Assembly: GCF_000143415.4 (NCBI RefSeq)
Contig: NW_003314286.1
Location: 1,110,239-1,174,238 of the forward strand
Origin: Selaginella moellendorffii
Taxonomy: Eukaryota > Plantae > Lycopodiophyta
Direction: 5' to 3'
DNA length: 64,000 nt
The notes under the pieces are model-generated. The model saw only the letters and a list, made by a program, of their open reading frames with translations. It was not told the origin of the DNA and searched no databases. Numbering within the stretch: the stretch's first letter is position 1; each line of letters begins with the position of its first letter. Position numbers and translations under genes: made by a program. Below are positions 3,899-57,516 of the stretch, in pieces.

Positions 3899-5410
3899 TG
3901 TAAGTGACTAATTTTTCCATTCTACTAACCACACCTTCGACCACTTGGAGGAGTCTCATTCACAACCTTCTTAAGTCTAATTCAGGACTTGGGACTTGCT
4001 AGCCCCGAGAATGGCATCCATGCCACTCATCCCTTGCATTTAGTCTAAGTGCTCCATATCCCGGTCCCAAGACCGACACCCCAAGGTACCACCAACATAC
4101 TAGCCCGTTACACTAAGGCCATGCTTATTTACCTTGGTCACACCGGTGGTCTAACCCACCTGCATCGCGGTCCTGTCTCTCAAAGACTGGGCCATCCGTC
4201 CATGAGTGACCATCTTGGGTCCACTCCTTAGCATCCTTAAGATGCCTGTAGACATAGGGAACAGCCTTCCCCAATATCCCTTTTACAGTCTGCACCAAGA
4301 TCTTTTTCTGTCTATGGTTGTGTTCACCAACACTGCCACTAGATCAAGGCCCACAGGCCTGACCACTAAGTCCTAGTGTCCTCTGGGACTTCCTCACCAC
4401 ATGACTGTATCATTGGTCACCACACTAAAGGATTGCTCCTCTTCCATTCTATAGTCTGGGACTTTGGGACAACATTTCGGAACACTATAGCCTTATGTGA
4501 GTCTCATGAGTACTCTCCCCACCTTCCGCCTTTTGGTGCTCTAGCCGTGGGCTTAGAGCGAGGTTCCATTGAGTCACATTAGGTATCCAAGTAGGTAGTG
4601 CCACCCACAGTTGGACTGGGAGCATCGACCATTCGATCTCCCAGGGGAACTAGAGTCGGCTCTTGAACACTTCACCAAGCTACCCCGCTTGACAATCCGT
4701 ATTCACTCTAGCCTTGGACCTCCCAGTGGTTATCTCGTCACCCAACACCTGGGCACAGCCTTCCTAGGCCAAACTGGCTCCACTAGAGTCCTCCCCTACT
4801 ATACTTTTGGAGCTCACCAAACCCCCAGGGTCTGGGAGACAAATGCTTTGGGCTTTCACCCTCTCAGACTCGAACTCGGACTTGGACTTGGACTTGGACT
4901 CGGACTTGGACTTGGGCTTAGGCTCAGTCTCAACCTCGGTCTCAGTCCCGGTCTCGGTCTCGGTCTTGGTCTCGACTTCGGACTCCATCTCGGGTCCTTC
5001 TCGGACTCCATCTCGGATTCCATCTCAGGTCCATCGCGGACTCCATCTTGGGTCCATCTCGAAGTCCATCTCGGACTCCATCTCGAGTCCATATCGGACT
5101 CCATCTTGGGTCCATCTCAGACTCCATTTCGGGTCCATCTCAGACTCCATCTCTGGTCCATCTCAGACTCCATCTCGGACACTTCCACATGTCATATGTT
5201 AGTCCTTTTGGGCCTCTTTTTCGAGCCTCACTTATTGCTCGCTTCATGCTCATTCCTCGAGCACTCCATTGGGAGTTCCACTCCCGCTCTTGACCTTTCA
5301 AGTCGGAGCTTTTAGTCCAATTGTGTTACGCTCGTTTGGCTTTTGCTTCGGCCATTACCACGTGGCATCCTTTCGGCTCCACTTTGGGGTTTAGGGATTT
5401 GTGTCTCACA
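3899..5410 (-). mobile_element. Solo LTR (~1.5 kb) with 5-bp TSD, nested in the 5S-LTR element
   Basis: TG...CA termini (tgtaagtgac...gtctcaca), flanked on both sides by GGTGT (3894-3898 and 5411-5415). Reverse-complement homologue at 6604-8565. Confidence 0.85.
4865..5180. repeat. 6-bp (CTCGGT/CTTGGA) and 12-bp (CTCGGACTCCAT-like) tandem arrays inside the LTR
   Basis: Visible periodicity. Produces the low-complexity LGLG/SDSISDS/TPSR ORFs in the track. Confidence 0.9.
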
Positions 5411-6305: not shown

Positions 6306-6483
6306 TATAAGCAACCAAAGGAAACGACTCAAGAAATGATCCATAGGGGTTCAAATATAGAGGGAAAGGGCCCATGAATAAGAGTGCACCCCCTTTTCCA
6401 AATGGTTAAGGTCTTAGGATATTTAAGGTTAAACGTCCTTGGGTTTGGGTGACCTCTCGGGAAGTCCAAACTCAAGAGCTACA
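6306..6483 (+). mobile_element. LTR-like repeat copy 2 with internally deleted 5S-derived segment
   Basis: tataagcaaccaaaggaaacgactc...gggttcaaata...ccatgaataagagtgca...ggtgacctctcgggaagtccaaact aligns co-linearly with 2772-~2955. The 3' end is truncated. Confidence 0.7.
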
Positions 6484-6603: not shown

Positions 6604-8565
6604 TGTGAGACACAAATCCCTAAGCCGAAAAGTGGAGCCGAGAAGTGGAGCCAAAAAGGTGCCACGTGGTAGTGGCCGAAGTGAATGCCAAACGAGTGTA
6701 ACATGTTTGGATTAAAAGCTCCGACTTGAAAGGTCGAGAGCGAGAATGGAACTCCCAATGAAATGCTCAAGGAACAAGCACAAAGCGAGCAATAAGTGAA
6801 TCTGTAGAAAAGGGACACAAAAGGACTAACATATGACACGTGGAGGAGTCTGAGATGGAGTCCAAGATGGAGTTCGAGATAGAGTCTGAGATGGACCTGA
6901 GGCCAAGACTGAGGCCCAGCCCAAGCCCGAGTCTGAGTTCGAGTTTGCCACATGGTAGTGGCCAAAGCAAATGCCAAATGAGTGTAACACATTTGGACTA
7001 AAAGCTCCGACTTGAAAGGTCGAGAGCGAGAGTGGAACTCCCAATGAAATGCTCAATGAACAAGCACAAAGTGAGCAATAAGTGAATCTGTAGAAAAGGG
7101 ACACAAAAGGACTAACACATGACACGTGGAGGAGTCCAAGATGGAGTCCAAGATGGAGTCCGAGATGGAGTCTGAGATGGACCTGGGGTTGAGACCAAGG
7201 CCCAGCCCAAGCCCGAGTCTGAGTCTGAGTTTGCCACGTGGTAGTGGCCAAAGTGAATGCCAAATGAGTGTAACACGTTTGGACTAAAAGCTCCGACTTG
7301 AAAGGTCAAGAGCAAGAGTGGAACTCCCAATGAAATGCTCAATGAACAAGCACAAAGCAAGCAATAAGTGAGTCTATAGAAAAGGGACACAAGAGGACTA
7401 ACACATGACACGTGGAGGAGTCCGAGATGGAGTCCAAGAAGGACCTGAGATGGAGTTCGAGATGGAGTCCAAGATGAATCCGAGATGGACCCGAGATGGA
7501 CCCAAGGCCAAGACCGAGGCCGAGCCCAAGCCCGAGTCTGAGTCCGAGTCTGAGTCTGAGTTCGAGTTTGAGTCTGAAAGGGTGAAAGCCCAAAGCATTC
7601 TTCTCCCAAACCCTAAGGGGTTTGATGAGCTCCAAAAGTATAGTAGGGGGAAGACTCCAGTGGAGCTAGTTTGGCCAGGAAAGGCTAGTTTGGCCCAAGA
7701 AGGCTGTACCCAGGTGTTGGGTGATGGGATAACCATTGGGAGGTCCAATGCTAGAGTGAATACAAATTGTCAAGCGGGGTAGTTTGGTGAAGTGTTCAAG
7801 AGCCGGCCCGGGAGATTGAATGGTCGATGCTCCCAATCCAAGTGTGGGTAGAATTACCTACTTGGATACCTAGTATGGCTCAATGAAACCTCGCTCTAAG
7901 TCCATGGCTAGAGCACCTAAAGGCGGAAAGCGGGGAAAGTACCCACGAGACTCGCATAAGGTTATGGTGTTCTAAAATGTTGTTCCAAAGTCCCAGACTG
8001 TAGAATGGAAGAGGAGCAATCCTTTAGTGTAGTGACCAAGGATACGGTCATGTGGTGAGAAAGTCCTAGAGGACAATGGGACTTAGTGGTCGGGCCTGTG
8101 GACCTTGTCCTAGTGGCAGAGTAGGCAAACTCGGCCATAGACAAAAAAATGATTTAGTGGGGACTGTAAAAGGGATATTGGGGAAGGTGGTTTCCCCTGT
8201 CTGTAGGCATGTCAAGGATGCTAAGGAGTGGATCTTGGATGGTCACTCCTGGACGGATAGCCCAGTCGTTGAGAGACGGGACTACAATGCAGGTGGTGTT
8301 GGACTACTGGTGGTACCAAGGTGAATGGGCATGGCCTTAGCATAATGAGTTGGTATATCGGTGGTACTTTGGGGTGTCAGTCTTGGGACCGAACACGTGA
8401 AACACTTGAACCAAGTGCAAAGGATGAGTGGTATGGATGCCATTCTCGGGGCTAGCAAGTCCTAAGTCTTGAATTGGATTTAAGGATGTTGTGAATGGGA
8501 CTCCTCCAAGTGGTCGGAGGTGTGGTTAAGTGACTAAAGTAGGATGAAAAAATTAATCGCTTACA
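6604..8565 (+). mobile_element. LTR (~1.96 kb), same family as 3899-5410, opposite orientation
   Basis: TG...CA termini (tgtgagacac...cgcttaca). Preceded by purine-rich GGGTGGTGGAG (PPT-like) and followed by TTTGGTG (PBS-like). No TSD. Confidence 0.8.
6661..7570 (+). repeat. Three tandem ~286-bp units within the LTR
   Basis: gccac(g/a)tggtagtggcc recurs at 6661, 6947 and 7233. The homologous solo LTR has only one unit. Confidence 0.9.
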
Positions 8566-11449: not shown

Positions 11450-12580
11450 TCAACGAGGTTGACCCACCGGTGAAGTGAGAATGAGAAAGGCTTGTAGGTG
11501 CTTGTTGAATTCCTTGGGCCTTTCCACTTGTGGAACGTGTCCTGTCTTTTCAATCACAACCAGCATCGCATTCTCACCTAAATGTCTGAAAAGAAGAGCA
11601 AGTGAGATCAGCACTGTAAGGAAAGAGACACTTGATTCTCAATCAATCAATCACTCACGCTTTTAGCTGTTTGGCGAGCTCCAGATCGAAGATCCGGTCG
11701 TGCGATCCCACGAGAATCAAGACCTCCTGTTCAAGAGCAATGTAAGTGCTAGAGAAATGATTTCCAAGAGTGTGTCTTTGCCTGTGAGAGCTTTGGCAGC
11801 GGCTGCGCGGCTTCGGTGCCGATGACCAGGCCGTCGAGGAGCTCAATCCTCTCCTTCCTGTTGCCGCCATACACCTGGATCGAAGCACAGTCAACGCACG
11901 GGCAGCAAGAGTCAACGAGGATTGAACACGAAAGCCTTTACCTCCATGAGATCCCGGACGAAGAAATCTGGGAGCCACAAGCGCTTATAGAGGCAAAGCT
12001 GGATGCTTTTCTTCTGGACCGCGATGGAGCTGGGCATGAGAACCTCGTGAATGTGCCTGGCCTGGAACGCGTCGAGGATCGCATCGTTGCTGTGGGGATC
12101 CATGCAAACGCCCGAGCTCGCGATCACTACCCTCTTCACGCGCGCCGGATCCAGCTCCGCCATCCGGAATGCCACGAATCCGCCGTAGCTCGTCCCCGCC
12201 ACCGCCGCCCCGTCGACGCCCTCCGCCTCGAGGATTTCGAGCATACAGCGAGCCTGGAAGAACTCGGACCGCGCGCGCTCGTCGCTGGTGGTCGATCCGC
12301 CAAAGAAGACGAGATCGGGCACGTAGAGCGCGAAATTTCGGGACAGATCGGGCAGCTGATGCTCCCACCCGGCGATCCCGTTGGCCGCGAAGCCGTGGAT
12401 GAGCATGAGCGGCGGCTTGGAGGGATCGTAGCCCGGGCTCGCGCGATCGGGCACCCAGCAGCGCATTACCGTGACGGAATCGCGCAAGGGGAACGTCTTT
12501 TCGATCAATCCCAAGCTCCGGCAGCGCTTCTCCAGCCGGCGTAGCATCGATCGAACGAGCGAGAAGCCGAAGCACGCCAT
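11450..12580 (-). CDS. Alpha/beta hydrolase (ABHD6/monoacylglycerol-lipase-like)
   Basis: LIHGF, PDLVFFGGS, GTSYGG nucleophile elbow, GHVPQVERP catalytic His region. Multi-exon. Confidence 0.9.
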
Positions 12581-12681
12581 TACCCTATAATCCTTCTCTT
12601 CTGAAGGTTCGAGAACCTTAAATACATTGTGAAGCATAGAATATGCTTATTTCGAGCAAGGAATATGCTTCTAGGATTAGG

Positions 12682-14649
12682 TTAAGATCGCGCCCACGCG
12701 CCAAGCAGGGCAGTGCGCGCGGCGTCGCCCGGGACGAAGGGCATGGCGAGGAGGAGCTCGCGGGCCTCGTCCAGGCGGCCACAGCGAGCTAGGAGATCCA
12801 CCGCGCACGCCCATTGATCCTCGCGCGGCACCACGCCGAAGTCGCCGGTGATGAGCTTCCAGCAGTGGAATCCCCGGTGGAGATCGCCGGTGTGGCTGCA
12901 CGAGAGGAGGAGGAGGCTGAAGACGATGGGATCGAGCGAGAGTCCCTCCACCGCCAGGGAATGCAGCGCTGCCGGGTCGAGGGCGGCGCCGCTGCGAGAG
13001 CGCGCGTCCAAGGCGCAGCTCCACGCGACTGGATCGGGCGAGATCTTCTGGGAGAGCTCTAGGGCTTCGGCGATTCCGCCGCAGCGGCCATAGGCGCTGA
13101 TGAGCGAGGCAAGCACGGCGGGCAGGGAGTCTAGGCCGGTACCCTGGATGCTCGAGTGGATCGTCTTGGCGATGGCGAGCGAGGAGATTTGGGCGCAAGC
13201 GTCGAGGGCTGCGAGCACCGTTGCTTCGTTTGGTGTCACTCCCTCGATCGCCATTCCCCGCAAGAGGCCGAGCGCGCGGCAGGGATCTCCGCTGGAAGTG
13301 AATGCTGCGATCATCGTGTTCCAGGAGATCGTGTCTCTTTGATCCATGCTGTGAAAGAGGGCTATGGCGGTATCGAGCGATCCGTGCTGGGCATACGCCG
13401 CGATCATCGTGTTTCGCGACGCAGTGTCCTCTACCGGTCGATCCTGGAGGAGAGATTGGGCAGCGAGGAGATACCCTCTCTGAGCATACGCGGCGATCAT
13501 TGCATTCCAGGAGATCGCGCTGCGCTCCGGCATCTGATTGAAGAGCGATCTGGCGTCGTGCAATCGATCGCCGTGCGCGAGGGCGGAGATCATGAGCGTG
13601 TAGGCGACGATGTTTCTGTGTGGCATTCGATCGAAGAAAACCTCAGCGGTGGCTAGATCTCCCTCGCGGGCGTGCGCGGACGCCATGGCCGTCCACGAGA
13701 TGACGTTCTTGTGCTGGATCGCGTGGAAAATCTCTCGCGCGGAGTCGAGAGCACTGAGATTTCCGTACGCGGTGAGCGTGATGTTGGAGGAGGTCGCGTC
13801 CCAGCAAGGCATTCGCAGGTAGCACTGGATCGCGAGGTGGAGCTCGCCCCTCTGGGCGATGGCTTCGAGCAGCGAGATCCATGACCAGGAGCTTCGATCT
13901 GGAACAAGGGAATCGAATGCTTCTGTGATTGCATGCCTTGTTCTTTCGGGATCTCGAGCTAGAGCAGAGACGATTGCTGTGCTTGAGATCATGTCCCAGA
14001 TCGGCATCAAATCAAAGACAGCCTTCGCGCCCGCGAATTTCTCCCCGGCCTGGATCATCTGGCTCCAGGACGCGATGTTACGCTGCGGGCAAGATTCGAA
14101 GAGAAATCTCGCGTCCTGGCAGCGATCTTCCCGAATTGCAGCCGCGATCATCGAGTTCCAAGTGAGAGTGGTGTGCTGGGGCATGCGATCGAAGAGATCT
14201 TGGCACTCCTTGCGATGCCCTTGCTGGGCAAATGCGGTCGCCATAGCGTTCCAAGAAACCATACCCCTAGAGGGCATACAATCGAATATCCGCTTGGCGG
14301 TGTGTATATTCCCGGCTTGGGCATATGCCGTGCACATTGTGGTCCACGTCACCTCGTCCCACGCAGGCATATTGTCCACCACGCGCTCGGCATCTTCCAG
14401 ATCCCTATTCCCGGCATATGCCTGTAGGAGGGAGTTCCAGGTTCGAATATCTCGAGCGCCGGCGCGGTCGAAAGCCATTGCGGCCTCATCCAACCGTCCG
14501 TGCTGGCCAAGTGCCATGATAATGGCCGTCGATGCCACTGCATCCCTCTCGGGCATTTTCTCGTAGAGCGCTAGTGCGGTGGGGAGGTCTCTGTTCCTGA
14601 CGAGCAAAGCGATGGAAATATTCCAAGAGATTATATTCCTTGGGCGCAT
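12682..14649 (-). CDS. PLS-class pentatricopeptide repeat protein, mostly short (S/SS-like) motifs, ending in the E region; no DYW
   Basis: Intronless ORF with ~31-aa repeats (A..lFd.Mp.r..isWn.mi.aya) and the terminal CAVDLLARCGRLDEA...MPFVP motif. The first in-frame ATG is at 14649; the track start at 14706 is TTG. Confidence 0.88.
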   Translation of the reverse strand: MRPRNIISWNISIALLVRNRDLPTALALYEKMPERDAVASTAIIMALGQHGRLDEAAMAFDRAGARDIRTWNSLLQAYAGNRDLEDAERVVDNMPAWDEVTWTTMCTAYAQAGNIHTAKRIFDCMPSRGMVSWNAMATAFAQQGHRKECQDLFDRMPQHTTLTWNSMIAAAIREDRCQDARFLFESCPQRNIASWSQMIQAGEKFAGAKAVFDLMPIWDMISSTAIVSALARDPERTRHAITEAFDSLVPDRSSWSWISLLEAIAQRGELHLAIQCYLRMPCWDATSSNITLTAYGNLSALDSAREIFHAIQHKNVISWTAMASAHAREGDLATAEVFFDRMPHRNIVAYTLMISALAHGDRLHDARSLFNQMPERSAISWNAMIAAYAQRGYLLAAQSLLQDRPVEDTASRNTMIAAYAQHGSLDTAIALFHSMDQRDTISWNTMIAAFTSSGDPCRALGLLRGMAIEGVTPNEATVLAALDACAQISSLAIAKTIHSSIQGTGLDSLPAVLASLISAYGRCGGIAEALELSQKISPDPVAWSCALDARSRSGAALDPAALHSLAVEGLSLDPIVFSLLLLSCSHTGDLHRGFHCWKLITGDFGVVPREDQWACAVDLLARCGRLDEARELLLAMPFVPGDAARTALLGAWARS

Positions 14650-17859: not shown

Positions 17860-20070
17860 ATGGCAAGAGGAGGGATCCGGAGGTCGCGCTGCGACGAGAA
17901 TGCGAGGAGGGCCGAGGAAGAGGAGGCAGAGGCCGTGAAGCGGGCGAAAGGAGCGGATTATGGCAGCTCCAGGGAGAAAGAGGGCACTGGATCGAGTAAG
18001 GAGCAGCAGCAGAGTAGGAAGGGCAAGAAATCTGGGCGTAGGAGAGGCCGCGCGAAGAAAGACGGGAGCTCCATGGCGACGGCGTTGCTCCCAATCAACG
18101 AGAATGCATCTGGATCGTCTCTGGAAGGGGGAATCGCCAAGAAAGACGAGGATTTGCTCGTGGACAAGGCCAAAAATGTTGAAGTGGAGGCTGTGGCATG
18201 TAAGGACCTTGTTTCCTTCTTTGAGTACTTTGTTCTAAGGGGAGATTTTTGCAGTCGTGGAAAGCACGAAGCCTGCGAGTTTGAGTGAGGATGGAGAAGG
18301 TAACTCCAACTTCGTTTGAAATTTGCTGACGAGTTTCTCGTTTCTCGTGTTTTCACAGTCGAGCTTTCGTCATCTTCTTGCATGCACAGCCCCGAATCGC
18401 CCAAGGAGAAGACTGTCATCTGGAGCAATGCTGCTTTCTGCTCAGAGCAGCAAACTCAGACGCCGACTGCGACGATGTCAGTGGAGAAAAGCGTCCTCGC
18501 ATGCAACGATGATACGGTGGCTGGTATGGAACTGATGACAGCTGAAGATACCAAAGGTAGCGATGACTCTTTAGCAGTGAAACTTTCCTTGGCTGTTGAT
18601 GAAAAGGAGGCCAACGAAGTACACGAAGTCAAGGTGCCAGAGAAAAATGAAATGACAGCGATCGTCGAAGACGAGGAAGTAGACCACTTGGAGAAAGAGA
18701 TAGAGAACGAGATCGCACTTCTGACTAAGAGGTTGGCGGAGCTTCGTGCAAAACGGGAGGCGAAACACAAGACACAGGAACGAGCAAAGCGTGCACTCAG
18801 CTGTCCCCCGACTCCGCTTTCGTCCGGACTACAGGAACAGACGAACGATGGAGACAAGAGTAAGAGCCGGGGGAAAGGAAGGATGGTGTCGGCCAAGTTT
18901 CTGCAGTGGCCAACAAAAAGTCCTGACCTTGAACCAAAGACGTCGGAGAAGCGGGCGTCCTTTAGAAGAAACGAGGCTACTACGATTTCCTTTCAAGCTA
19001 CTCCGACGAATGCCGTGACTCCTTTCTCCAAAGGTACTTCGACGGGTGCTGTGACTTCTTTTTCGAAGGCTACGACTCCTCATCATGGCCGTGCTCCTGT
19101 TCCGGACGCTGAGCAAAAGGAAACTTCTCTCAAGTCGGCTCCAAGAGTTTCTGTTCCGGACGCTGAGCAAAAGGAAGCTTCTCTCAAGTCGGCTCCAAGA
19201 GTTCCTGTTCCGGACGCTGAGCAAAAAGAAACTTCTCTCAAGTCGGCTCCAAGAGTTCTTCTTCGAAGCAAAGCCATTGAGAAACTCCAGGCAGGCGCAG
19301 GTCTCAAGTGTCTAGCTCGGCCAGCGAGCTCCCTGAAGGGTAGCTACCGTTGCAGCCTCGATGGCAACTTCATCGAGCAGATCCGAAACCTCAGCTTAAG
19401 CCCCGCCACCAGCAACGTTTCGGAGGCATCCAAGAAGTTCGACTGGACCAAGTCGCTTAGATCTGGAGCTACCGTGGAGAAGAGGCCCCAGGTTGACGAG
19501 AGCCACAAGAAGGCAAAGGGGACTCCGGAAGCACAGCTTCTAGTCGATCTCAAGGAGAGCAACAAGGCGTCCAAAGTTTCTCCGTCCGTGACACGAAAGG
19601 TGAGGAACGTTGCAAGCCGGTACAACGAGTCTCCTGCTCAACACCAGCCTACGAGGAAGCGATCTCTGGACATCCCGTCTCAAGCGCCAGAGATGGGAGG
19701 AGCGGCACCAGCAGCTTCGAGCCACAGGAAAAGAGTGTCACTCGATCAGCAGCAGCAGCAGGAGCAGGCAGTGGTCGACGCAGCAAATCCTCCAGCTCGA
19801 AAGTCTGGCATTGGAGCAGCGGCAAGGTCCGGATTGAGTCGTCTCCGGCCGAGGAATCCAGCGAGCAAGGAGGCGATGAAAACGCCACCGATGAGAAGAG
19901 ATGGATTGGAGAGCGAGCTCAAGAAGCTGCCGGGTCTGGTGATCAACCGGGAGGTGGAGTATAGTCCCAGAGACTCGGGCTGCGTGAAGCGCGCGAGCCA
20001 ACAAGGAGGACAGAAGAGCTTCTTCCTAAGCACCGAGAGCTGGGACGCTGGCCATCGAGATGAAAAGTAG
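17860..20070 (+). CDS. Conserved plant coiled-coil protein similar to Arabidopsis At4g02800
   Basis: Ordered motifs IWSNAAF, EIENEIALL..RL..LR, GR.V.AKF, VASRY, RKRSL and SPRDSG..KR match that family as I recall it. The 5' exon structure is uncertain. Confidence 0.7.
19096..19257 (+). repeat. In-frame 54-bp coding tandem repeat x3 (PVPDAEQKETSLKSAPRV)
   Basis: Three near-identical units visible in both DNA and translation. Confidence 0.95.
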
Positions 20071-20252
20071 AGAAAATCTAAGCGAGGTAACGTTTGTTTC
20101 TTCTTTTTTTTTATCTCCCATGGTTTGATCGCTCAACTTCTGGCTGGGTCATCCTTTTCAAATAAGGGGAATATGCTTGTTGTTAAATACTATGCGAATA
20201 TACTCGTTGTTCTAAGAATATTTAGGGTTCTACGGAAGAAGGTCAGGAGGTT

Positions 20253-21707
20253 ATGGCTGGCGCCCCGCCTCCAGGTTTGGCGATCGCGCCGATCGATCGA
20301 TCAATCACTGACGCTTCTCTCTTGTAGACGATAGCAGCCTGGTGGTGGTGTTGCTGGATACGAGCCTGCATTTCTGGAATGCAGTGGTGAGGTCCTCTTC
20401 AGGGCTCCAACAGGTGAGAATATTTTGCATTTCCTTGAAAGGGGCCAGTTTGATCTCTTCGTTTCTCACAGGTTTTGTCATTCCTCAATTCTCTGGCGCT
20501 CATGAATCACATGAACCATCTGGTGATTATTGCGAGTGGATGCAATTCTTGGTGAGTGACAAGAACTTCTTTTTGCCGTTGCTAAAAATTTTCCCTGCCT
20601 GTAAATTGCAGCGAATTCTTATATGATTCTTTGGACTCAGATGAAAGAGCTGGTGCAAATCACCAGACGGCCTCGGAGAAGATTGTACAGAAATTAAATG
20701 ATTTCGTTTCCAGGGATGCTACTCAGCCTCCGAAATTCCAGCCTTCGCTACTCTCGGCGTCCTTGTCAATGGCTCTTTGTTGTGAGTATCTCATTTCTAT
20801 CCTTTTAGTTTTTCCTCTTTCCCTTCGCAGATATCCAAAGGGCACTCAAAGAAAAGATAGGTCCTTCCAAGCCCAGGGTGAGTAGCGTGGTTTGACCCGC
20901 TTGTCTTACATTTGCTTACTACAGATGCTTTGCTTGCAAGCCTCGCCTGACGCTCCTCATCAGTAGGATATTTTGTTTTTTTGTTTTCTTTTTTCCGAGT
21001 AATACGTGGTTTCATACGATGGTTCGGGTTTTGAAGGTACATTGCTATCATGAATGCGATCTTCTCAGCACAGCGTTCCATGGTTATCAAGTTTCACGAG
21101 CTTTATCAAGAAGCGTATATTAACCATCTCTTACTGCGTTTTAGGTGCCAATCGATGCGTGCATGGTCGGTGCTCAACATTCGGCCTTTCTTCAACAGGT
21201 TTGAAGTGAGACTCTTTCGTTTCCTTTTCTTCTATCGTAACATTCCAGGCCGCGGACATTACCGGTGGAACTTACTTAATGCCGCAACAAGCGGATTCGC
21301 TGTTAGAGTACTTGATGGTATAAAACTTGGAACTTCCTTTTTCATTCTTAAGAGATGTTTCCGGCAGACAATTTTCACAGTGGATTTACACTCTAGGCAA
21401 TTCATCCAGCTCCCCCGCTCGGCAGGAGTGGATTTTCGGGCCTCGTAAGGAGAAGAGAAAAAAGCTTCAATCAAATTATAACAGACATTCTTTGCAGCTG
21501 TTTCTGCCACAAACGCACAATTGACATGGGCTATATATGCTCGGTTTGTTTATCAATCTTCTGCAAGCAACATAAGGAGTGCTCAACTTGCGGGTAAGTC
21601 AAGACTTTTGTCTACTTTCCTCTTTTCCATCTTCTGACGTGAGGGAAAAAAATTACAGCTCAAGCTTTGCTAGCAGCGGCACGAAGCGCAAGACGCCCGC
21701 CTCGTGA
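20253..21707 (+). CDS. TFB4: TFIIH subunit TFB4/p34 (GTF2H3), intact copy
   Basis: SLVVVLLDT, SLLSASLSMALC, YIAIMNAIFSAQR, FLQQAADITGG, GVDFRASCFCH, GYICSVCLSIFC zinc finger. Multi-exon. Confidence 0.88.
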
Positions 21708-22433
21708 CTCTTACACAGAATACAACAGCCGACCTCCTGCTGCGGTTTTGGTGGTATTAGTTCCAACTCCCAGGATCAACTCCCTTCGTCGATGCTTGGC
21801 TCATGTCGTGCCGCCGCACGGCCTCCTTGAGCTTTCTCTGATGCTCTCGAAGCGAGTGATACATGACAAGTGCCACGACCTTTCCAGAGTCGAGATCACG
21901 AGCCTTGTATACGTTACTGTAAGTTCCTTGTCCAATCTGCAATGATAAGAAACGTTCCCATAAAATCTTTGCTGTCCTTAACCTTGTCAAGCTTTTCGAA
22001 AGAATCAACATCCAGCCTTTGATCGCCTCGCCAGCCACCGCCATCCGCGGCGACCTTGGGGAAGGATTTGGATCCTGTGCATGGATCCTGTGCAGCCTCG
22101 CCCGGCGCTTGTCCATGCTCCTGGCTTTGGATCTCTCGAACACGATCCAACTCGATGCTCGTAGATAAATGCGCAGCTGTGGCCGCGAGTAGGATTTGTC
22201 GTTGGGACTTTCCTGCGATCAGGACGACTTTGCGCAGATAGGTGCGCTGTGGAGACTAGCTTCTTCCTTGATTGCAGCTCCTAGCTGCGGCAGCTCATTC
22301 CCATCCATTGGAATCCAACGCAGCTCCTCGGATTCTCGAGCGGGCAAGCGCTTCTCCCAGCTCCCGGAGCGCCGTAAAGAGTGACATCTAGACTGCAAGA
22401 CAGCATTCGCAATACCGCCGCCATCTCCTACCT
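21708..22433 (-). pseudogene. Deletion-riddled duplicate of the CDK-like kinase gene
   Basis: Co-linear fragments of 26044-29064. The start codon segment (caccccatt) and most of the kinase domain (~1.9 kb) are deleted. Confidence 0.9.
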
Positions 22434-22486
22434 GTGATGGCACACGCGTAGGCAATAGGAATTCACGCCCGGTACGTACTCCGTAG

Positions 22487-24917
22487 TTAATTTAATGGCA
22501 TTTTCTCCTGCTTCAACCGTTTGCGCCCGGCTTTCTGCTTGGCTTTCATTTTAGCAGCTTCAGCTTCCATTAAACCGTTGAGTGGAATTGCTAGAATCAG
22601 GTCGGGTGTGCTGGGGAACTTCTTCCTCGAGGACGCATCTGGGATTCCGTACTTCTCTGCAATGTCCTGCAATTCCGCTCTGAGAAACATCCCACGGTAT
22701 TTCTGTTTGTCGGCCAGCTGCTCATCCAGTTCGTTCTCTCTCTGCTTCTTCCTGGCCTTCTTTTCGTTTGCAAGCCTCTCCCTCAATTTGCCCAACTCCT
22801 TTAGCAGCGCAATTTCCTCCTCTGTCAACCGCAAACACCTGTCAAAAGCAATCTCTGCTTTTGTGTATGCAACTGTGCCGTCGTCCTGCTCATAATGCGT
22901 CACCAGTTCCTTCGCTTCCTTGTTCTTAGTGCCCTTAGTCTTCTCCGGAGTTCCTGAAACATAGCAAGTTAAGAAAAGCCAAGAAAAGATTCCTAGGCTA
23001 CCTTTCTTCCTGGATGTCGGCTTGTTAGTCTTCTCCGGAGTTCCTGAAACATGCGGGGTCATTAGACAAGAGAAGCCATAATTAAACTACGTTACCTTGT
23101 TCTAACGTCCTGTTTTCCTCGTGCTCCTCCGACGGAAGAGAAGTCGGCTTCGGGCAGACGTACACATAATATAGCTTGAAAGGATCAGTAAGGATTGTCC
23201 ACTGTATAAATTCTTCTCGACGCACGAACTTAAACTCTGTACTTCTGTGAGCTCCGGGGTTGAGGCACACCTGAACGAACCAGAAGTGTAGCATTCCATG
23301 CCCGTCCTTCCAGACAAGCAAGCCGTCAACGTACTTGAAATTAAACGATCCTGTCATGTAGAAAACCTTCTCGTTCGTGTTCAAGTCGCTGGCGGTTATC
23401 AGCTTCGGCTTGCCAGATAAACTTTCAACCCGATCCGCCCGGTAGTTGGTGCCTCGAAAACAGAAGCCCTCGTCCAATACAGCCTCTGCTACAATCCCCT
23501 CGCATATGTATCCTACTTGGGGCCAAACGGTGTTCCTTTCCTTCAGTAGCTGTTGAAGGAGCGCACGCATCTGCGGAGTTCGGTACACATGGCTCTCCCT
23601 CCTTAACAAACGCATCTGGAGATCGAGTTCCCGGATAAACGGAGTGCAAGGAATCGAAGACTCCTGGCCGGCAATAGGGAGAAGAAATCCGTCCACGAGG
23701 TCGGGCTGCTTCCGCATTGACTGGAAATTTTCATCCTCCCTGAATAACGAGACAACCTCACTCCAGTCGCAAGCATCAGCAAGGAATTTATGGCCGGGTG
23801 GCAAACAATGAGCTGACGAAACTATCTCAGTCGTAGACCTAGAGGGTACCTGCCAACGAAGAAACAATTAGCTGAAACATAGTTGATGACCACATACCGG
23901 CCCAGTTTCAGTCTTCCGCTTCAATACCGCCATCGCGAGCGGATTCTCAACTTTCCGCTTGTTGGAAGCAGCACCAGTTATTGTCTTCACGTACTGCGCA
24001 CATTTTTCCTCGAGCAAGTACAAGGACATAGGATGTCTCCCAGCAAGATGGTCCACCACAGCGACACGGTCAGGATTCTCTCGGAGCATCGGGCCGAGAA
24101 TTTTACAAGTCGTGAGAAATGTATTGTACTCCTCCTGCAGTAAGCAAGATAATGACGATACGCGAAGAAAAATCTATTTTACCGAGGTGAAAAGACAATT
24201 GAAATGCTCGTTGATATGTGTTACGTCCACCCGAGTTACGTTGCGCGAAAATGTCTGGAACCTGTGAGTAGACCACTTGTAAAAGACATCTAGCCAGCGG
24301 CTGGCTGCCTGTGCATCTTCTGTATCCTCCAAACGCCTAGGTGAACCGTCCTTGTGTGACTTATCGTAGCGTTCTGCGCCATCAACCAAGAGAAAGAACT
24401 TCTCATTCTGAACTCTGATTTTCAGAAAAGCATCCAGGCTGTCAGGGGAGTCAATAAGCCCAATCTTCTCGACAGCTTCGGCGTCATCGCTGAAGGCGAA
24501 GTAGAGTGCGGCCGTAATCTGTGGGACGAGAGGGGCCATCGCATCTAAGTACCAGATGCATATGATCCTGAGTTTCGGAATCTGGGCCGAGATAAGCAAG
24601 ATTGCCAAGGCCCGCAAAAAGCATGATTTCCCTGAACCCTTTACGCCACTCAAGGAAACTACGCATGAGACATCCAAGGCTGGGTTCTCCCCAATCTTTT
24701 CAACAAGACGCGAAAGTATCTTCCCGTATTCCTGCCGAGTTACAAAATCGAAGACCTTAGACGGCCTCGTGCCTGTTCTAGACCAGGGCAAACCGGGGAA
24801 TGGCAGAGACGCAACGATCTCACCTGGCCTTGGATCGACTAGCTTCCTGAAGTTCTCGTCCCCAAGGGCAATGATCATCTGCTTGATTTGCTCCGCTCGC
24901 ACCGCATCCGCTGCCAT
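22487..24917 (-). CDS. Orphan Crinkler/CR-type protein: P-loop NTPase + PD-(D/E)xK-like nuclease + basic HeH/Rho-N-like tail (~5 exons)
   Basis: Walker A SGVKGSGKS, Walker B FFLLVDG, FTSEE and G.HP..L motifs, then YVDGLLVW...FWFVQV. The four ORF pieces join in frame through canonical GT-AG introns. The true 5' end is uncertain. Confidence 0.65.
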
Positions 24918-25123
24918 TCGGTTGAAACCTTAATATGATATACTTCACGAAGACTAGGTCTCAACTCCAGAGAGCAGTTCCTTCGAGGCCCTGGCAAATT
25001 CTCTTAAGAAAATCGCTTTCTGATTAAGATGGAGCTAAGTGAATTTCTGGCACTCCTTACATTGTGAGCCAACAGGGAGGAAAGAAGAGCTTTTCCCTAA
25101 GCACCCGGGAAGAGTACAGTTTC

Positions 25124-26043
25124 AAGAATATTTAGGGTTCCCGGGAATCTAAGCGCGGACCATCTTTTTATAATAAGTCGTCGTTTTAAGAACATTAAAG
25201 GATCGAGCGATCGCACTGATAGATGATAGCAGCCTGGTGGTGGGGCAGCATTTCTGGAATGCAATGGTGCGGTCCTGTTCAGGGCTCCAACAGGGAGAAG
25301 ATTGTACAGAAGTTAAATGATTTCGTTTCCAGGGATGCTACTACAGCCTCCGAGAGTCCAGCCTTCGCTACTCTCGGCGCGCTTCATTTCTATCCTTTTT
25401 AGTTCATCCTTTCAAGCCTCCACATCAGTAGGATCTTTGATTTTTTTTCCAATCCAATGGTTTGCGTTTTATTGCTAATGCGATCTTCTCAGCACAGCGT
25501 TCCATGGTTATCAAGTTTCACGAGCGTATCTCTTACTGCCTTTTAGGTGCCAATCGATGCGTGCATGGTCGGTGCTCTACATTCGGCCTTTCTTCAGCTG
25601 ATACTCTTTTCTTTCTTTCCTTTTAGTGTAAAATTCCAGGCCGCGGACATTACCGGTGGAACTTCTCTAATGCCGCAACAAGCGGGTTCGCTGTTAGAGA
25701 GTATTTGAGAAAGTTGGAACTTGTTCTTTCTTAGGCACGGTGGATTCACAGTGGATTACACTCAAGGCAATTCATCCAGCTCCCCCGGAGTGGATTTTCT
25801 GGCCTCGTAAGTAGAAGAGAAATAAAACTTCAATCTCAACTTATAACAAACATTCTTTGCAGCCGCTTCTGCCACAAATGCACGATTATCAATCTTCTGC
25901 AAGCAACATAGAGAGTGCTCAACTTGCGGGTAAGTCAAGACTTTTGTGTACTTTGTCTTTTCCATCTCCTGACGCAAGGGGAAAAAAATTACAGCTCAAG
26001 CTTTGCTAGCAGCGGCACGAAGCGCAAGACGCCCGCCTCGTGA
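25124..26043 (+). pseudogene. Deletion-riddled duplicate of TFB4 including its upstream region
   Basis: Co-linear fragments of ~20075-21707 with many short deletions and frameshifts. The 3' end is nearly identical (caagctttgctagcagcggcacgaagcgcaagacgcccgcctcgtga). Confidence 0.9.
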
Positions 26044-26142
26044 CTCTTACACAGAATACAACACTGGTGGTGGCCGACCTCCTGCTGCGGTTTTGGTGGT
26101 ATTAGATCCGACTCCCAGGAAGGGAAAGACAAGTACCTGGAA

Positions 26143-28745
26143 TCAACTCCCTTCGAGGTTGCTCTTCTCGGCCGATGCTTGATTCATGTCGTGCCGCCGC
26201 ACCGCCTCCTTGAGCTTTCTCTGGTGCTCTTCAAGTAGCTCTTCGATGTCTACTGGGGCAGAGAAGCCGGGACGAAGCAGCGGGCCAGAGTGATACATGC
26301 GCTCCTGAGGATCATAGCCCTGCAAAGCAAAAGTATTTAAGTACATTCACAAGCAGCCGATATGACAATGTTACCGCTGGAGTCGGCTGAGAATCTCTCG
26401 CTCCAAACGCTCCGTCCTTGGCCGGGGCCTCGGGAAGATTTGGGGGCCCACGGAACACGTCCGAGCGCCGGGAGTCGAGCTCGTGTTTCCTGTCGGCGGC
26501 CTTGAGCACGCTCCGCAAGTTGTGCTTGGAGAAGTCGCCATCCTTCCCTTGGCCTTGCTCGGCAAAAGACCCGTGCCGTGACGAGCTGCTTGTGATCCTG
26601 TCAACTTCCACTTGTCCGGTGGATGATCGCATTGCCCTGCTCGTCGACCGTTGCGGGGCCATTCTCACGTCCTCGTCTCGTTGCTTCCGGGACCAGTTGG
26701 CAGTCGCTGCTGTCGGGTTCCCAATTGGGCCAGAGCGCGATGATGCTGGAGGCACAAACTGGCGTGGTGGAACCGGTGACGTGCCCCGGACATCCGTGGG
26801 TTGCTGCCCGTATCGCGGAGCTGGAGGCTCCATGGGAAATCCAGATGCTGACTTTTCGGAAAGATACGTAAACTTTTCGCTCTTGCTCTTCGAGGAATGA
26901 GAAGACAAACGCCGTTTCTGACGGAAAAATAAAAAGTAAAAAATAGAAAAATAAAACGTGAGAAAAAAAAGAAAGAAATGCAGCCATTTATTACGAGCAG
27001 AAATTACCTGTACGGAAGCGTGAAGCTCTGCATTGGCGTCGGGCGCAGGCACGGCCCTGCTACGTTCCCTGGAGCCATGCCTCCGGCCTTCTGCAACACC
27101 ATGCTTGGCTGCTCTCTGTCTGGAATGGTAAAAACAAGCACCGCTTTAGTATAATTGGACAAAAGCACGAGGATATAATTACCTCCTGGACTCTTCATCT
27201 CTCATCTTGGCGTCAAATTCCTTGCTCGGAGGATATTTTGGTAGAACAGATGGATCGCATGGAAACGGCTTAGTGTTAAAAAACTGCATGGAAGCACTCA
27301 AGTTAGAATGTTACAAGTGCATGCATGAGCCACTTACATCTGCTTTCAGTGCTCCAGCTGCAGTTCCTCTATCAGCCGGCTCAATCGCAAGAAGAATATC
27401 GAGAAGGGCCAGTGCGGTCGAAGGGAAGTCTTTGTAAGTATCAGCGATGCAGCGTTTGTAAGGCTGCTGCGGCTTAAAAATCGTAGCGTGAGGAAGTTTG
27501 GATTTTTTCCAATACTCTTCCGATGGCGAGCCACATAGCTTAAAAATCTTGTGTAATTGCTCCACCTGTTCGATCAATAAGAAAGGCAGGCGTTACTAAA
27601 CATCGTAAAATAAAAACCAAGGAGCATACTTCCGTTCGCCCAGGCATGATGGGCTTGCCAGCCAGTAATTCAGCTAGTATACAGCCAGTGCTCCAGAGAT
27701 CCACCCCAACACTGTATTCTGTAGCACCGAGTAGTAGCTCCGGCGGCCTGTACCAGAGCGTCACAACCCGGCTAGTTAAAGCAAGGTTCTGGTAGGGGTG
27801 ATAAAACGTCGCCAATCCAAAGTCGGCAATCTTAAGAATCCCGCTGTTATCTATCAAGAGGTTGGACCCTTTGATGTCGCGATGCAGCACGCCTCTGGTA
27901 TGGCAATGATCGAGTCCTCGTATTAATTGTTGTAAGTAGCATTTAACCTGAAATCGCAAAAAACATGTAACTGAAGGAAAAAAAAAGAGAGGGTAGCTTT
28001 TGCAAACCTGTGGTTCTGTGAACATGATGCCCGGACAAGCTGCGAGCCCGGCAAGATCGTGCTCCATGTACTCGAACACAAGGTAGAGGCTGGACGACAT
28101 GCGGGAGGTAACCAGGCCTTCCAGCTTCACCACGTTTGGATGGTCGAGCCTCCTCAGTATCTGGATTTCCCGGGCCATGAACTTGACGCTCTCGGGCTCG
28201 AGGCTGTCAAAGCGGACCTTTTTGAGTGCCACGACCTTTCCAGAGTCGAGATCACGAGCCTTGTATACGTTACTGTAAGTTCCTTGTCCAATCTGCAAAG
28301 ATAAGAAACGTTCCCTCAGGCAACCATATCAAAGAAAACCAAATCCACTTGCGAGCCTTCGTACCTTGTCAAGCTTTTCGAAAGAATCAGCGCGTCGAGG
28401 AATCCAGCCTTTGATCGCCTCCCCAGCCACGGCGGAGAGCCAACCGGGCCACCCCGCGGCAACTTGCTCGCCCTCGGCCTGCTTGGGGATGACGCTTTGA
28501 CGAGGATTTGGATCCTGTGCATGGAGCCTCGCCCGGCGCTTGTCCATGCTATCCTCGCGACCATTTTGTCTCGTCCTGGCTTTGGATCTCTCCCTGTCCT
28601 TTTCCACGATCCCGTTGAGCCCCTCGAGCGTCTCGATCCTCGCAGATCCATTGAAATGCCGCAGCTGTGGCCGCGAGTAGGATTTGGCCTTGGGACTCTC
28701 CTGCGATCTCGAGGTGGAGGACGACTTTGCGCAGATACACCCCAT
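26143..28745 (-). CDS. Plant CDK-like (CKL / At1g54610-type) Ser/Thr kinase, intact copy
   Basis: MGCIC N-terminus, EQVAAGWP.WL, IGQGTYSNVYKA, ESVKFMAREI, HRDIKGSNLL, DFGLA, TSRVVTLWYRPPELL, and C-terminal YHSGPL. Confidence 0.93.
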
Positions 28746-29252
28746 TGGTGCGCTGTGGAGGAGACTCTAGCAAACAATCCCTTCTAGCCCTCTTCCAGTA
28801 GCTCTTCCTTGCTTGCAGCTCTTAGCTGCGGATGAAACCCCAGCTCATTCCCATCCATTGGAATCCGACTCCAGTGGCACCATAATCGCAGCTCCTAGGG
28901 TCGAAAAACCTAAACCCCGGGATCCTCGAGCTAAATTCCAGTAGCGGATGCTTCTCCCAGCTCCCGGAGCGCCGACGAGAGCAAGATCTAGGCTCCCAGA
29001 CAGCATTCACGACCGCGCCGTGGCTGCGCAACACCCCCGCTTCTCCAGCGCCACATCCTACCTTGGATTCTCTTTCGAGCTCTCTCACAGCGCCTTCTTT
29101 CTCATCCCTCGCCCTCGTCGATGATCGCACTGATCGATCGAAAGTTTTGCCACTGCGCAGGAAAAATAGATTTTTAAGTGTTCCCCAAATTAGGTTATAA
29201 GGGTTACTATGACGGGCGCGACGCGTCACTGACGTGTGGCCGTCGCAAGAAA

Positions 29253-54948: not shown

Positions 54949-57516
54949 ATGCATTCCTCTAGCCGCTCAAGGAATCCTGCCGCATTGCCGTCGAAATATC
55001 GGGATTTCTCGGGTGGAGCACGCTGGAAATCCTCGGTAGCTATGAGTTCTTCGCTAGGGCTAGAGATTGTGGAGGCGGGAGGCGTGGATTCTGGGAAGAG
55101 CGGTGCCGGGAATCGCAAGGTGGACAGGGCTACGTCGATTGTTCTTGCGGCATTGAAGTCCTGCCGGGATTTGAGAAAGGGGAGGAAGATCCACGCGGAA
55201 ATGGCCCACGATCGCGAATCCAACATCTACGTCGCCACTGCGCTCGTCAACATGTACTCCAAGTGTGGGAGCCTCGCGGAAGCGAAGAGAGTCTTCGATC
55301 AGATGGAGGCTCGCGACGTTGTCTCGTGGACGGCGATGATACTGGGCTATGCCGAGAGTGGCAAAGGTGACGAAGCGCTCAAGCTCTTCGAAAGCATGGA
55401 AGCTCTGCCGAATTCTCGGGCTTTCGTCGCGGCTCTCAAGGCCTGCTCGGCTCTTGCGACGAGAGAAGCTGTGCTCGATGGGAAGATCGTCAAGGTTGCG
55501 ACGCTCGCGAAGGCGAAGGATTTGCACGCTCGAGCCGCGAGCGCTGGCTTCGACACGGACATCTTCGTCGCCAACACGCTGGTGGATGTGTACGCGAAGT
55601 GTGGAGCCATGGAACTCGCGAGGGAGGTATTCGATAGAGCCGCGCTTCGTCGCACTGTGGTCTCTTGGAACGCGCTGATGCTCGGCTATGCAGGAAACGG
55701 CGAGGAGAACGTAGCGCTGGAGCTTTTCGCTGTCATGCTACGTGAAGATGGCTTCCCTCCGGACTCACGGAGCTTCCTCGCCGCGCTCAAGGCCTGCAGT
55801 AGCCTGGCGGCGAGAGAGGAAGCGAGGCGAGTGGATGGCAGGCTCGTCAAGCTCGAGAGCTTGAAGAGAGGGATGGAAATTTACGCACAGGCTGTGAGCA
55901 GCGGCTTCGACACCGACTTATACGTTGCCAGCACGGTGGTGGACATGTTTGCGAAATGCGGCAACTTAGTCCAGGCTCGGAGGGTGTTTGACAGAATGGA
56001 GCACCGGAACTCTGTCGCGTGGAACGCACTGATTCTCGGCTATGCCGAGAACGATGAGGAAGAGGTGGCTGTGGATCTGTTTCGGCGCATGGGAACAGGA
56101 GAAGCTTGCGCACCAGATGGCTCGACTTTCATTGCGGTGCTCAAGGCATGCATTGGTTTTGCCGAGAAGGAAAGCCCGACGCAAATCGATGGGAAGGTGG
56201 TGAAGTTCCAGGCACTAAGAACAGGTATGGGAGTTCACTCTCAAGCTCTAAACCGTGGTTGTCATCGTGACAGTTTCGTGGAGAACGTTCTAGTGGACAT
56301 GTACGCTACCTGTGCGAGCTTAGTGGACGCGCACAGGGTCTTCGACAGGATAGTTGCGAGGGATGTAGTTTCGTGGACAGCACTAATGCGGGGATATACT
56401 GAAACCGGGGAGCCAGAGGTGGCTTTGGATTTGTTCCAAGAGATGTTTGGAGCTGAAGCGTGCTGGCCGAACGCTCGGAGCTACCTTGTTGCAATCAAGG
56501 CATGCACATGCCTCGCCGAGAAGGAGCCAGCCAGTGGAAACGAAGAACTTGAACAGGAAGCGGAACTTGCGAAAGTCGGAGCTCTAGAGAAGGGGATGGC
56601 GATTCACTCTCGAGCTGCACAGGATGGATTAGTGGCTTCGAATGTGTTCGTCCCGAGCAGCCTGGTGGATATGTACACGAAGTGTGGCAGCATGGTGGAC
56701 GCACGCAGAGTCTTCGACGAGATGTCCAAGCACGACGTTGTTTCGTGGACAGCTTTGATTCTCGGCTACGCTGAAAACGGTCACGGGGACTTAGCGCTGG
56801 AAAGTTTCTCGCGGATGCAAAGAGAAGGTTGTCTGGCGGACTCGAGAACTTATGCTGCTCTTGTCAAAGCCTGTGCAAGCGCCGCCACCTTGGGAGCTGT
56901 GAAAGCTGCCTATGGAGAGGTTTGCCGGCAGGGACTTGAGGACGATGCGAGCTTGGCAACTTCTCTCATCGACTGCTTCGGCAAATGTGGGACCTTGATC
57001 GATGCTCAGCTCGTCTTCGACTCTATTTCGACTATAAAAGACCCGGTCTGCTGGAGCACGATCATCTCGGCTTACAGTCGCCAGGGTGACACTCAACGCG
57101 TTTTCTCTCTTTTCAACGAGCTCGTCGAGGCAGGCCAACAGGCAGACGGTGTGACTTATCTCTGTCTGCTCACGGCCTGTGGCCACTCGGGGCTTGTGGA
57201 GACCGGAAAGAAGTACTTCGAGGCCATGCTGTCGTCGGGAGGAATAGCTCCTGCCATCGAGCACTACCACAGCATGATCGATCTGCTGGGACGGGCCAAC
57301 AAGCTCAACGAGGCTGTAGACATGGCGAGAAGCATGCCGTATGAAGCGACCGACGTTACTTGGAGGACGCTCCTGGGTGCCTGTCACAAGTGGAAAAATG
57401 TGGAGCTGGGAAGGATCGCGTTCCGGGAGCTGATTAGAGTGGATGCAAAGGATTCGTCTGCTTACGCGATGATGGCCAACTTAAGTCCAGCTTCAGAGGA
57501 GTTTGAAGGTGGCTGA
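54949..57516 (+). CDS. PLS-class PPR protein with E domain, no DYW
   Basis: Intronless P-L-S triplets (ALVNMYSKCGSL..A..VFD.M..RDVVSW) and terminal HYHSMIDLLGRA...MPY...W.TLLGAC. The start could include an upstream exon at ~54741. Confidence 0.92.
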   Translation: MHSSSRSRNPAALPSKYRDFSGGARWKSSVAMSSSLGLEIVEAGGVDSGKSGAGNRKVDRATSIVLAALKSCRDLRKGRKIHAEMAHDRESNIYVATALVNMYSKCGSLAEAKRVFDQMEARDVVSWTAMILGYAESGKGDEALKLFESMEALPNSRAFVAALKACSALATREAVLDGKIVKVATLAKAKDLHARAASAGFDTDIFVANTLVDVYAKCGAMELAREVFDRAALRRTVVSWNALMLGYAGNGEENVALELFAVMLREDGFPPDSRSFLAALKACSSLAAREEARRVDGRLVKLESLKRGMEIYAQAVSSGFDTDLYVASTVVDMFAKCGNLVQARRVFDRMEHRNSVAWNALILGYAENDEEEVAVDLFRRMGTGEACAPDGSTFIAVLKACIGFAEKESPTQIDGKVVKFQALRTGMGVHSQALNRGCHRDSFVENVLVDMYATCASLVDAHRVFDRIVARDVVSWTALMRGYTETGEPEVALDLFQEMFGAEACWPNARSYLVAIKACTCLAEKEPASGNEELEQEAELAKVGALEKGMAIHSRAAQDGLVASNVFVPSSLVDMYTKCGSMVDARRVFDEMSKHDVVSWTALILGYAENGHGDLALESFSRMQREGCLADSRTYAALVKACASAATLGAVKAAYGEVCRQGLEDDASLATSLIDCFGKCGTLIDAQLVFDSISTIKDPVCWSTIISAYSRQGDTQRVFSLFNELVEAGQQADGVTYLCLLTACGHSGLVETGKKYFEAMLSSGGIAPAIEHYHSMIDLLGRANKLNEAVDMARSMPYEATDVTWRTLLGACHKWKNVELGRIAFRELIRVDAKDSSAYAMMANLSPASEEFEGG

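Follow-up and report, generated by a model that had tools for sequence, protein, structure and literature searches.

Tandem duplication and complementary gene decay around a predicted ATPase gene in Selaginella moellendorffii

How does a gene come to stand at the junction of a tandem duplication, and what keeps it there? The question is raised by a locus of Selaginella moellendorffii that lies within 64,000 nucleotides (nt) of contig NW_003314286.1, hereafter the window, i.e. the whole stretch of DNA that was analysed. Here, a gene for a predicted P-loop ATPase (the middle gene) separates two copies of a block, units A and B, each of which carries one copy of a TFB4 gene and one of a CDK-like kinase gene (TFB4-A and CDK-A, TFB4-B and CDK-B). 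An earlier note on this DNA had described a duplicated gene pair in which each copy lost the opposite gene, with the middle gene exactly between them, and had suggested that the surviving homology may help to lock this gene in place. Our own gene models were verified one exon at a time and used for searches in the same way, full-length searches were run with the public protein P0012 of the middle gene, and the second haplotype was compared through the annotated proteins on its scaffold. Coordinates are collected in Table 1.

The duplicated block and the decay of its copies

Units A and B lie in direct orientation; over the 1,647 aligned bases of a global alignment they are 92.9% identical (7.1% mismatches). 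Repeat search and self-BLAST agree on collinear direct matches of 20.0-21.85 kb with 25.07-26.23 kb and of 21.87-22.42 kb with 28.2-29.0 kb, and the three comparisons together bear out the duplication of the TFB4/CDK-like pair. The units do not abut head to tail, a unique spacer of 2,625 nt (22441-25065) lying between them. The left boundary (A19995/B25066) is sharp and cuts through the 3' end of the upstream gene U, inside its last ~25 codons; unit A takes in the final ~75 nt of this gene, while unit B opens with 40 recognisable nt of its 3' end (25066-25105, matching 19995-20034). The right boundary (~A22440/B29066) is good to ~20 nt and adjoins a splice-donor-like AG/GTAGGA. Outside both boundaries homology was sought and not found, local alignment scores being at the level of shuffled sequence. 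With one edge sharp and the other placed to ~20 nt, the position of the middle gene exactly at the duplication junction holds up as well. The fragment of U in unit B and the U allele of the other haplotype both read GGKKSF, where U of the present haplotype reads GGQKSF; this shared reading suggests that the ancestral state was kept there and that the K-to-Q change in U postdates the duplication.

An exon-by-exon check of frames and splice sites confirmed the proposed order of TFB4 intact, CDK-like pseudogene, middle gene, TFB4 pseudogene and CDK-like intact. TFB4-A has no internal stop and a single terminal one, and its pieces match the Pfam family Tfb4 (PF03850) at profile positions 28-55, 81-127 and 191-273 (best E = 1.2e-14) as well as human GTF2H3/p34 in the PDB (E = 2e-9). 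By these matches, its product is predicted to be the TFIIH subunit TFB4/p34, including the C-terminal zinc finger. TFB4-B has lost exons 1 (with the ATG) and 3, exons 4-6 are truncated, a 29-nt deletion in exon 11 takes out zinc-finger cysteines, and no Tfb4 match was found in Pfam. CDK-B starts with the N-terminal motif MGCICAK and carries a Pkinase domain (Pfam, E = 1.6e-56); the best PDB matches of its exon 3 are CDK12/13/11/7 (E = 2e-35), and among solved structures the predicted product appears closest to CDK12/13. In CDK-A, the ATG is deleted and the counterpart of B 26299-28224 (1.9 kb, kinase core) is missing, with 3 nt of filler at the core-deletion junction near 21865 (read by eye), which is typical of end joining; a weak Pkinase match persists on the open reading frame (ORF) 21757-22143. 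The TFB4 and CDK-like genes are convergent (tail to tail), with stop codons ~100 nt apart.

Table 1. Positions of the units, genes and gene remnants in the window (CDS, coding sequence; aa, amino acids)
Feature	Positions	Strand	Remarks
Duplicated unit A	19995..22440		3' tip of U, intact TFB4, CDK-like remnant and its upstream region
Duplicated unit B	25066..29066		3' fragment of U, TFB4 pseudogene, intact CDK-like gene and ~320 nt upstream
TFB4-A, intact	20253..21707	+	12 exons, 834-nt CDS, 277 aa, every intron GT-AG
TFB4-B, pseudogene	25220..26043	+	517/834 coding nt left (62%)
CDK-A, CDK-like pseudogene	21776..22240	-	405/2145 coding nt left (19%); parts of exons 8, 2 and 1 only
CDK-B, CDK-like kinase, intact	26143..28745	-	8 GT-AG exons, 2145-nt CDS, 714 aa
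Unique spacer	22441..25065		middle gene with 46-nt 3' flank and 148-nt 5' flank
Middle gene, SELMODRAFT_414929 / LOC9636735	22487..24917	-	5 exons, 744 aa; public model XP_002974807.1 (P0012), same length
Exons of the middle gene	24917-24183, 24134-23898, 23849-23096, 23043-23002, 22953-22487	-	
"Safe" crossover window	21548..21787 (~240 nt)		homologous to B 25884-26154
Upstream gene U, SELMODRAFT_442564 / LOC9636734	17860..20070	+	P0001/P0002 map to 17860-20067

The losses in the two units are complementary. In the TFB4 half of the alignment, 17 gaps of at least 10 nt represent sequence missing in B versus one in A, while in the kinase half none is missing in B versus 20 in A (Fisher p = 6e-10 for the asymmetry between halves). 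As TFB4-B has only 62% of its CDS and CDK-A 19%, the claim that each unit lost the opposite gene is well founded. Jukes-Cantor distances between A and B are 0.04-0.05 in exons and ~0.11 in introns and upstream DNA, the pattern given by one constrained and one free copy. The dying copies are the two that face the junction: CDK-A and TFB4-B are broken by dozens of deletions, whereas the outer copies, TFB4-A beside U and CDK-B beside the downstream DNA, are intact and keep their native upstream DNA. Decay proceeded by many small deletions, about one of at least 10 nt per 100-150 nt, or 0.7-1 per 100 nt in the inner pseudogenes. Before the junction, upstream DNA amounts to 260 nt for TFB4-B and 320 nt for CDK-A. 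Breakpoints near the 5' ends of tail-to-tail genes would have severed the inner copies from their upstream DNA and crippled them at birth, and if AG/GTAGGA at the right boundary acts as a donor, CDK-A would be without any 5' exon or promoter beyond 29066. If the inner copies were indeed crippled from the start, the reciprocal loss is to be expected and not a coincidence with a chance of 25-50%.

In many respects, the locus resembles other cases of tandem segmental duplication followed by complementary gene loss, with direct multigene copies, genes that return to single copy and units that keep different genes. Decay by deletion is likewise as expected in a small, deletion-biased genome. The present copies differ in being split by a unique 2.6-kb gene at their junction, and in a loss pattern that was probably set by truncated upstream regions and not by chance. 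As a whole, this is a clean and datable case of a duplicated block resolving in a compact plant genome, with a neutral divergence of ~0.11.

A trivial origin, in which two haplotypes of one locus were wrongly joined in tandem during assembly, had been named in the earlier note as a possible refutation. The public S. moellendorffii assembly, which is known to contain both haplotypes, does hold allelic proteins on two scaffolds. However, the two copies are 7% diverged, show 37 reciprocal deletions of at least 10 nt and each lack a different gene. Moreover, the true allelic copy lies near SELMODRAFT_438480/405102 on a separate scaffold of 4.34 Mb (4,340,499 bp), on which the alleles of U and the middle gene are 96% identical in protein. 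This second scaffold carries an allele of U (P0003), a fused U+TFB4 model with an A-like TFB4 (P0004) and an allele of the middle gene (P0005; 741 aa, full length, 96.07% protein identity), P0004 and P0005 having the consecutive UniProt accessions D8QYE2 and D8QYE3. Given the divergence, the complementary defects and the real second haplotype, mis-assembly can be set aside with near certainty.

The gene at the junction

The middle gene is in good order. Its reading frame is open, each of the eight splice sites is preserved, the four introns (48, 48, 52 and 48 nt) are GT-AG, and its GC content at third codon positions (GC3) is 0.59, with 0.57-0.60 in the neighbours. At the decay rate of the two pseudogenes, ~16-24 deletions of at least 10 nt would be expected under neutrality in its 2431 nt, and no disrupting deletion is present. 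Since the gene is undisrupted against this expectation and both alleles are full length, it is maintained by selection. The decay of the flanking pseudogenes can thus serve as an internal yardstick for selection on the ATPase gene, which is useful for the poorly understood plant Crinkler-like family.

One internal feature of the gene is an exact direct repeat of 28 nt (22935-22962 and 23025-23052, 90 nt apart), which copies an intron acceptor and the first codons behind it (GTPEKT...), giving rise to mini-exon 4 (42 nt). The duplicated peptide is also found in the allele P0005.

Several origins of the gene were considered and rejected. A transposable element or its cargo was discarded in view of missing terminal inverted repeats and target-site duplication, of missing Helitron-like ends (by eye) and of missing near-identical copies. 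A retrocopy does not agree with four GT-AG introns that are all needed for an open frame, and recent horizontal transfer does not agree with native GC3 and introns, distant paralogues and a homologue in a fern.

The earlier label "orphan" proved too strong, as the gene is a member of a small family found in lycophytes and ferns. An exhaustive HMMER search with exon 3 against 1.84 billion representatives returned 7 proteins: besides the allele, these are five other S. moellendorffii clusters with 23-37% identity and a protein of the fern Adiantum capillus-veneris. The paralogues are LOC9633370, SELMODRAFT_430802, 418248/411088, 412734 and 412431, and the fern homologue is GOP47_0027853. Among public proteins, no annotated paralogue at 50-90% identity was found, the nearest full-length relative reaching at most 37%, and no second copy was found within the window. 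The family alignment places a Walker A motif (GxKGxGKS) at residues 91-98 and the Walker B aspartate at D179. Further towards the C-terminus, E441 is invariant and D499 and Q517 are conserved, while the position of the nuclease lysine is occupied by T or C (Q517-x-T/C), and a C-terminal Rho_N/HeH-like helix pair lies at ~681-701. Matches to AAA_16, NACHT and nSTAND do not reach the Pfam cut-off (4.5e-6 at best, within the family), and the predicted N-terminal domain resembles the ATPases of ORC/Cdc6, DAP3 and NLR proteins at borderline Z values of 8-9. A full-length structure model built from 9 sequences reached a predicted local distance difference test (pLDDT) score of 58 overall and of 70-80 in the E-D-Q region, the single-sequence model of exon 3 only 34. 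Structure searches with the 9-sequence model (Foldseek, VIA) gave ATPase-type matches only and did not recover a nuclease fold, and a profile search of the PDB found nothing. Judging from motifs and model, the product is predicted to be a P-loop ATPase of STAND/ORC-like type, in which a conserved E-D-Q module and a C-terminal HeH-like tail follow the ATPase domain.

This architecture calls to mind the Crinklers. In the ESM Atlas, the product is nearest to clusters of Mucoromycota, one of them with a Crinkler header (score 0.92, TM 0.40). The C-terminal module of Crinkler/RHS-type (CR) proteins is, in the summary that PMC5289972 gives of Zhang et al. 2016, composed of a P-loop nucleoside triphosphatase (NTPase), a helix-turn-helix and a restriction endonuclease (REase) domain, and the same summary reports Crinkler-type NTPase-REase proteins from land plants. 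The middle gene likewise codes for an N-terminal P-loop ATPase followed by a conserved E...D...Q. However, it differs from CR modules in several respects: the Crinkler N-terminal header PF20147 was not found by Pfam in the product or in 8 relatives, the REase lysine is replaced by T/C, no nuclease fold was recovered, and the family counts no more than 7 among 1.84 billion representatives. In the absence of the header and of a conserved nuclease lysine, we call the product Crinkler-module-like and not a member.

How the gene may have come to the junction

In an ancestor of S. moellendorffii, a block of ~5 kb was duplicated directly; it comprised TFB4 and the convergent CDK12/13-like gene, together with the 3' tip of U and ~320 bp of DNA upstream of the kinase gene. 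In the history that we prefer, a single complex rearrangement (break repair or replication template switching) would have produced this duplication and, in the same event, taken up the ATPase gene at the new junction. The redundant donor copy of the ATPase gene would have been lost later, and the captured copy is probably driven by its 148-nt flank together with the orphaned promoter region of TFB4-B. A link between the arrival of the middle gene and the duplication is plausible, and for both in one event we would put the chances at about even. What makes us prefer capture is that it explains both the death of the two inner genes and the precise position of the insert; that a later integration would by chance have struck within ±20 nt of the junction is improbable, which favours arrival together with the duplication. 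We also count in its favour that the middle gene is found together with U/TFB4 on both haplotype scaffolds. Rearrangements that combine duplication and insertion are known from filler-DNA capture in plant double-strand-break repair and from template switching of the type of fork stalling and template switching (FoSTeS) or microhomology-mediated break-induced replication (MMBIR). These systems likewise combine the duplication of a segment with foreign or ectopic DNA at a novel junction and lack transposon termini, but the present insert is a whole functional, intron-bearing gene and not a short filler. Several points weigh against the capture history. Neither a donor nor a close paralogue of the middle gene was found among annotated proteins (nearest full-length relative at most 37% identical), its native GC3 and short GT-AG introns would fit an old resident neighbour equally well, and the spacer, whose ends were searched for terminal repeats and target-site duplication, lacks the hallmarks of a transposon. 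In addition, the intron in the 5' untranslated region of the kinase gene, with the promoter arguments built on it, is a prediction from sequence.

The middle gene might instead have been an old neighbour in the order U-TFB4-CDK-middle gene-D, so that three genes were duplicated in tandem, each later returned to single copy, and the distal copy of the middle gene was removed by one deletion of at least 2.6 kb or, as a variant, skipped by a second template switch. This needs common types of events only, kilobase deletions do occur at the locus (1.9 kb gone from CDK-A), and the gene is old, native-looking and single-copy, with no donor copy, its stop codon lying ~370 nt from the start position of CDK-A, a normal intergenic distance in a compact locus. 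On the other hand, no second trace of the middle gene was found to the right of 29066 (tblastn E > 8), the survivor would be the copy without native upstream DNA past 148 nt while the copy in full context was deleted, and the outer-intact, inner-dead pattern would then be only 25-50% likely. Both this history and capture need two novel junctions; we regard the old neighbour as rather unlikely, with perhaps one chance in four. Insertion of the middle gene into the dead zone after a simple tandem duplication, maybe favoured by the orphaned TFB4-B promoter, seems less probable still. The junction region would have been selectively neutral after the duplication, and the gene and the remnant of TFB4-B are arranged head to head, ~300 nt apart, yet the insertion must have hit the junction itself (sharp at 25065/25066, ~20 nt at 22440), a target of tens of nt among several hundred permissive ones, and neither transposon ends nor a target-site duplication were found. 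It is very doubtful that the middle gene represents a self-moving ATPase/nuclease-like family whose integration, perhaps via breaks made by its own product, generates multi-kb target duplications, with reciprocal decay then making excision costly and the insert addictive to the locus that hosts it.

Persistence of the insert and its surroundings

Does the decay of the flanking copies hold the middle gene in place? A crossover between the units would carry over the lesions of TFB4-B if it fell left of 21548, and those of CDK-A if it fell to the right of 21787. Between these positions, however, it would leave a single TFB4-CDK pair with both genes intact and remove the middle gene. This interval accounts for 15% of the aligned bases; of the perfect tracts of at least 20 nt it holds 27%, among them the longest one (85 nt, 21643-21727). 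Since such an interval exists, reciprocal decay narrows the routes to the loss of the middle gene and does not close them. The suggested lock thus stands as a partial barrier to excision and was overstated beyond that; it also assumes that TFB4 and the kinase are both essential and single copy. More probably, the middle gene persists mainly through selection on itself, to which reciprocal decay would add only a partial barrier. An insert stabilised by reciprocal loss in flanking duplicates is conceptually interesting, although realised only in part here, and the locus is a tidy, instructive and fairly ordinary duplication scar that calls for no new mechanism.

Gene U, at the left edge of the block, is represented by the ORF 18316-20067, which is 100% identical to SELMODRAFT_442564 / LOC9636734 on an S. 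moellendorffii nuclear scaffold of 2,002,060 bp. Its coding region contains a 54-nt tandem repeat in three copies (19095-19264, 94-100% identical) that encodes the 18-aa repeat PVPDAEQKE-T/A-SLKSAPRV, and the allele of the other haplotype has the same three with small differences. Further away, an inverted repeat of 1.1 kb (3899-5021 versus 7417-8565, 82% identical) surrounds an internally repetitive stretch at 6660-7552 with units of ~290 nt (83-87% identical), and short repeats occur nearby at 2774-2952 and 6308-6480. Together, these repeats probably represent nested transposable elements. GC content swings from 23% at 1-2000 to 62% at 12001-14000, with ~47-53% elsewhere in the window. The self-BLAST alone showed diverged direct repeats within 55223-56798 (64-71% identical, with a period of ~340-1400 nt).

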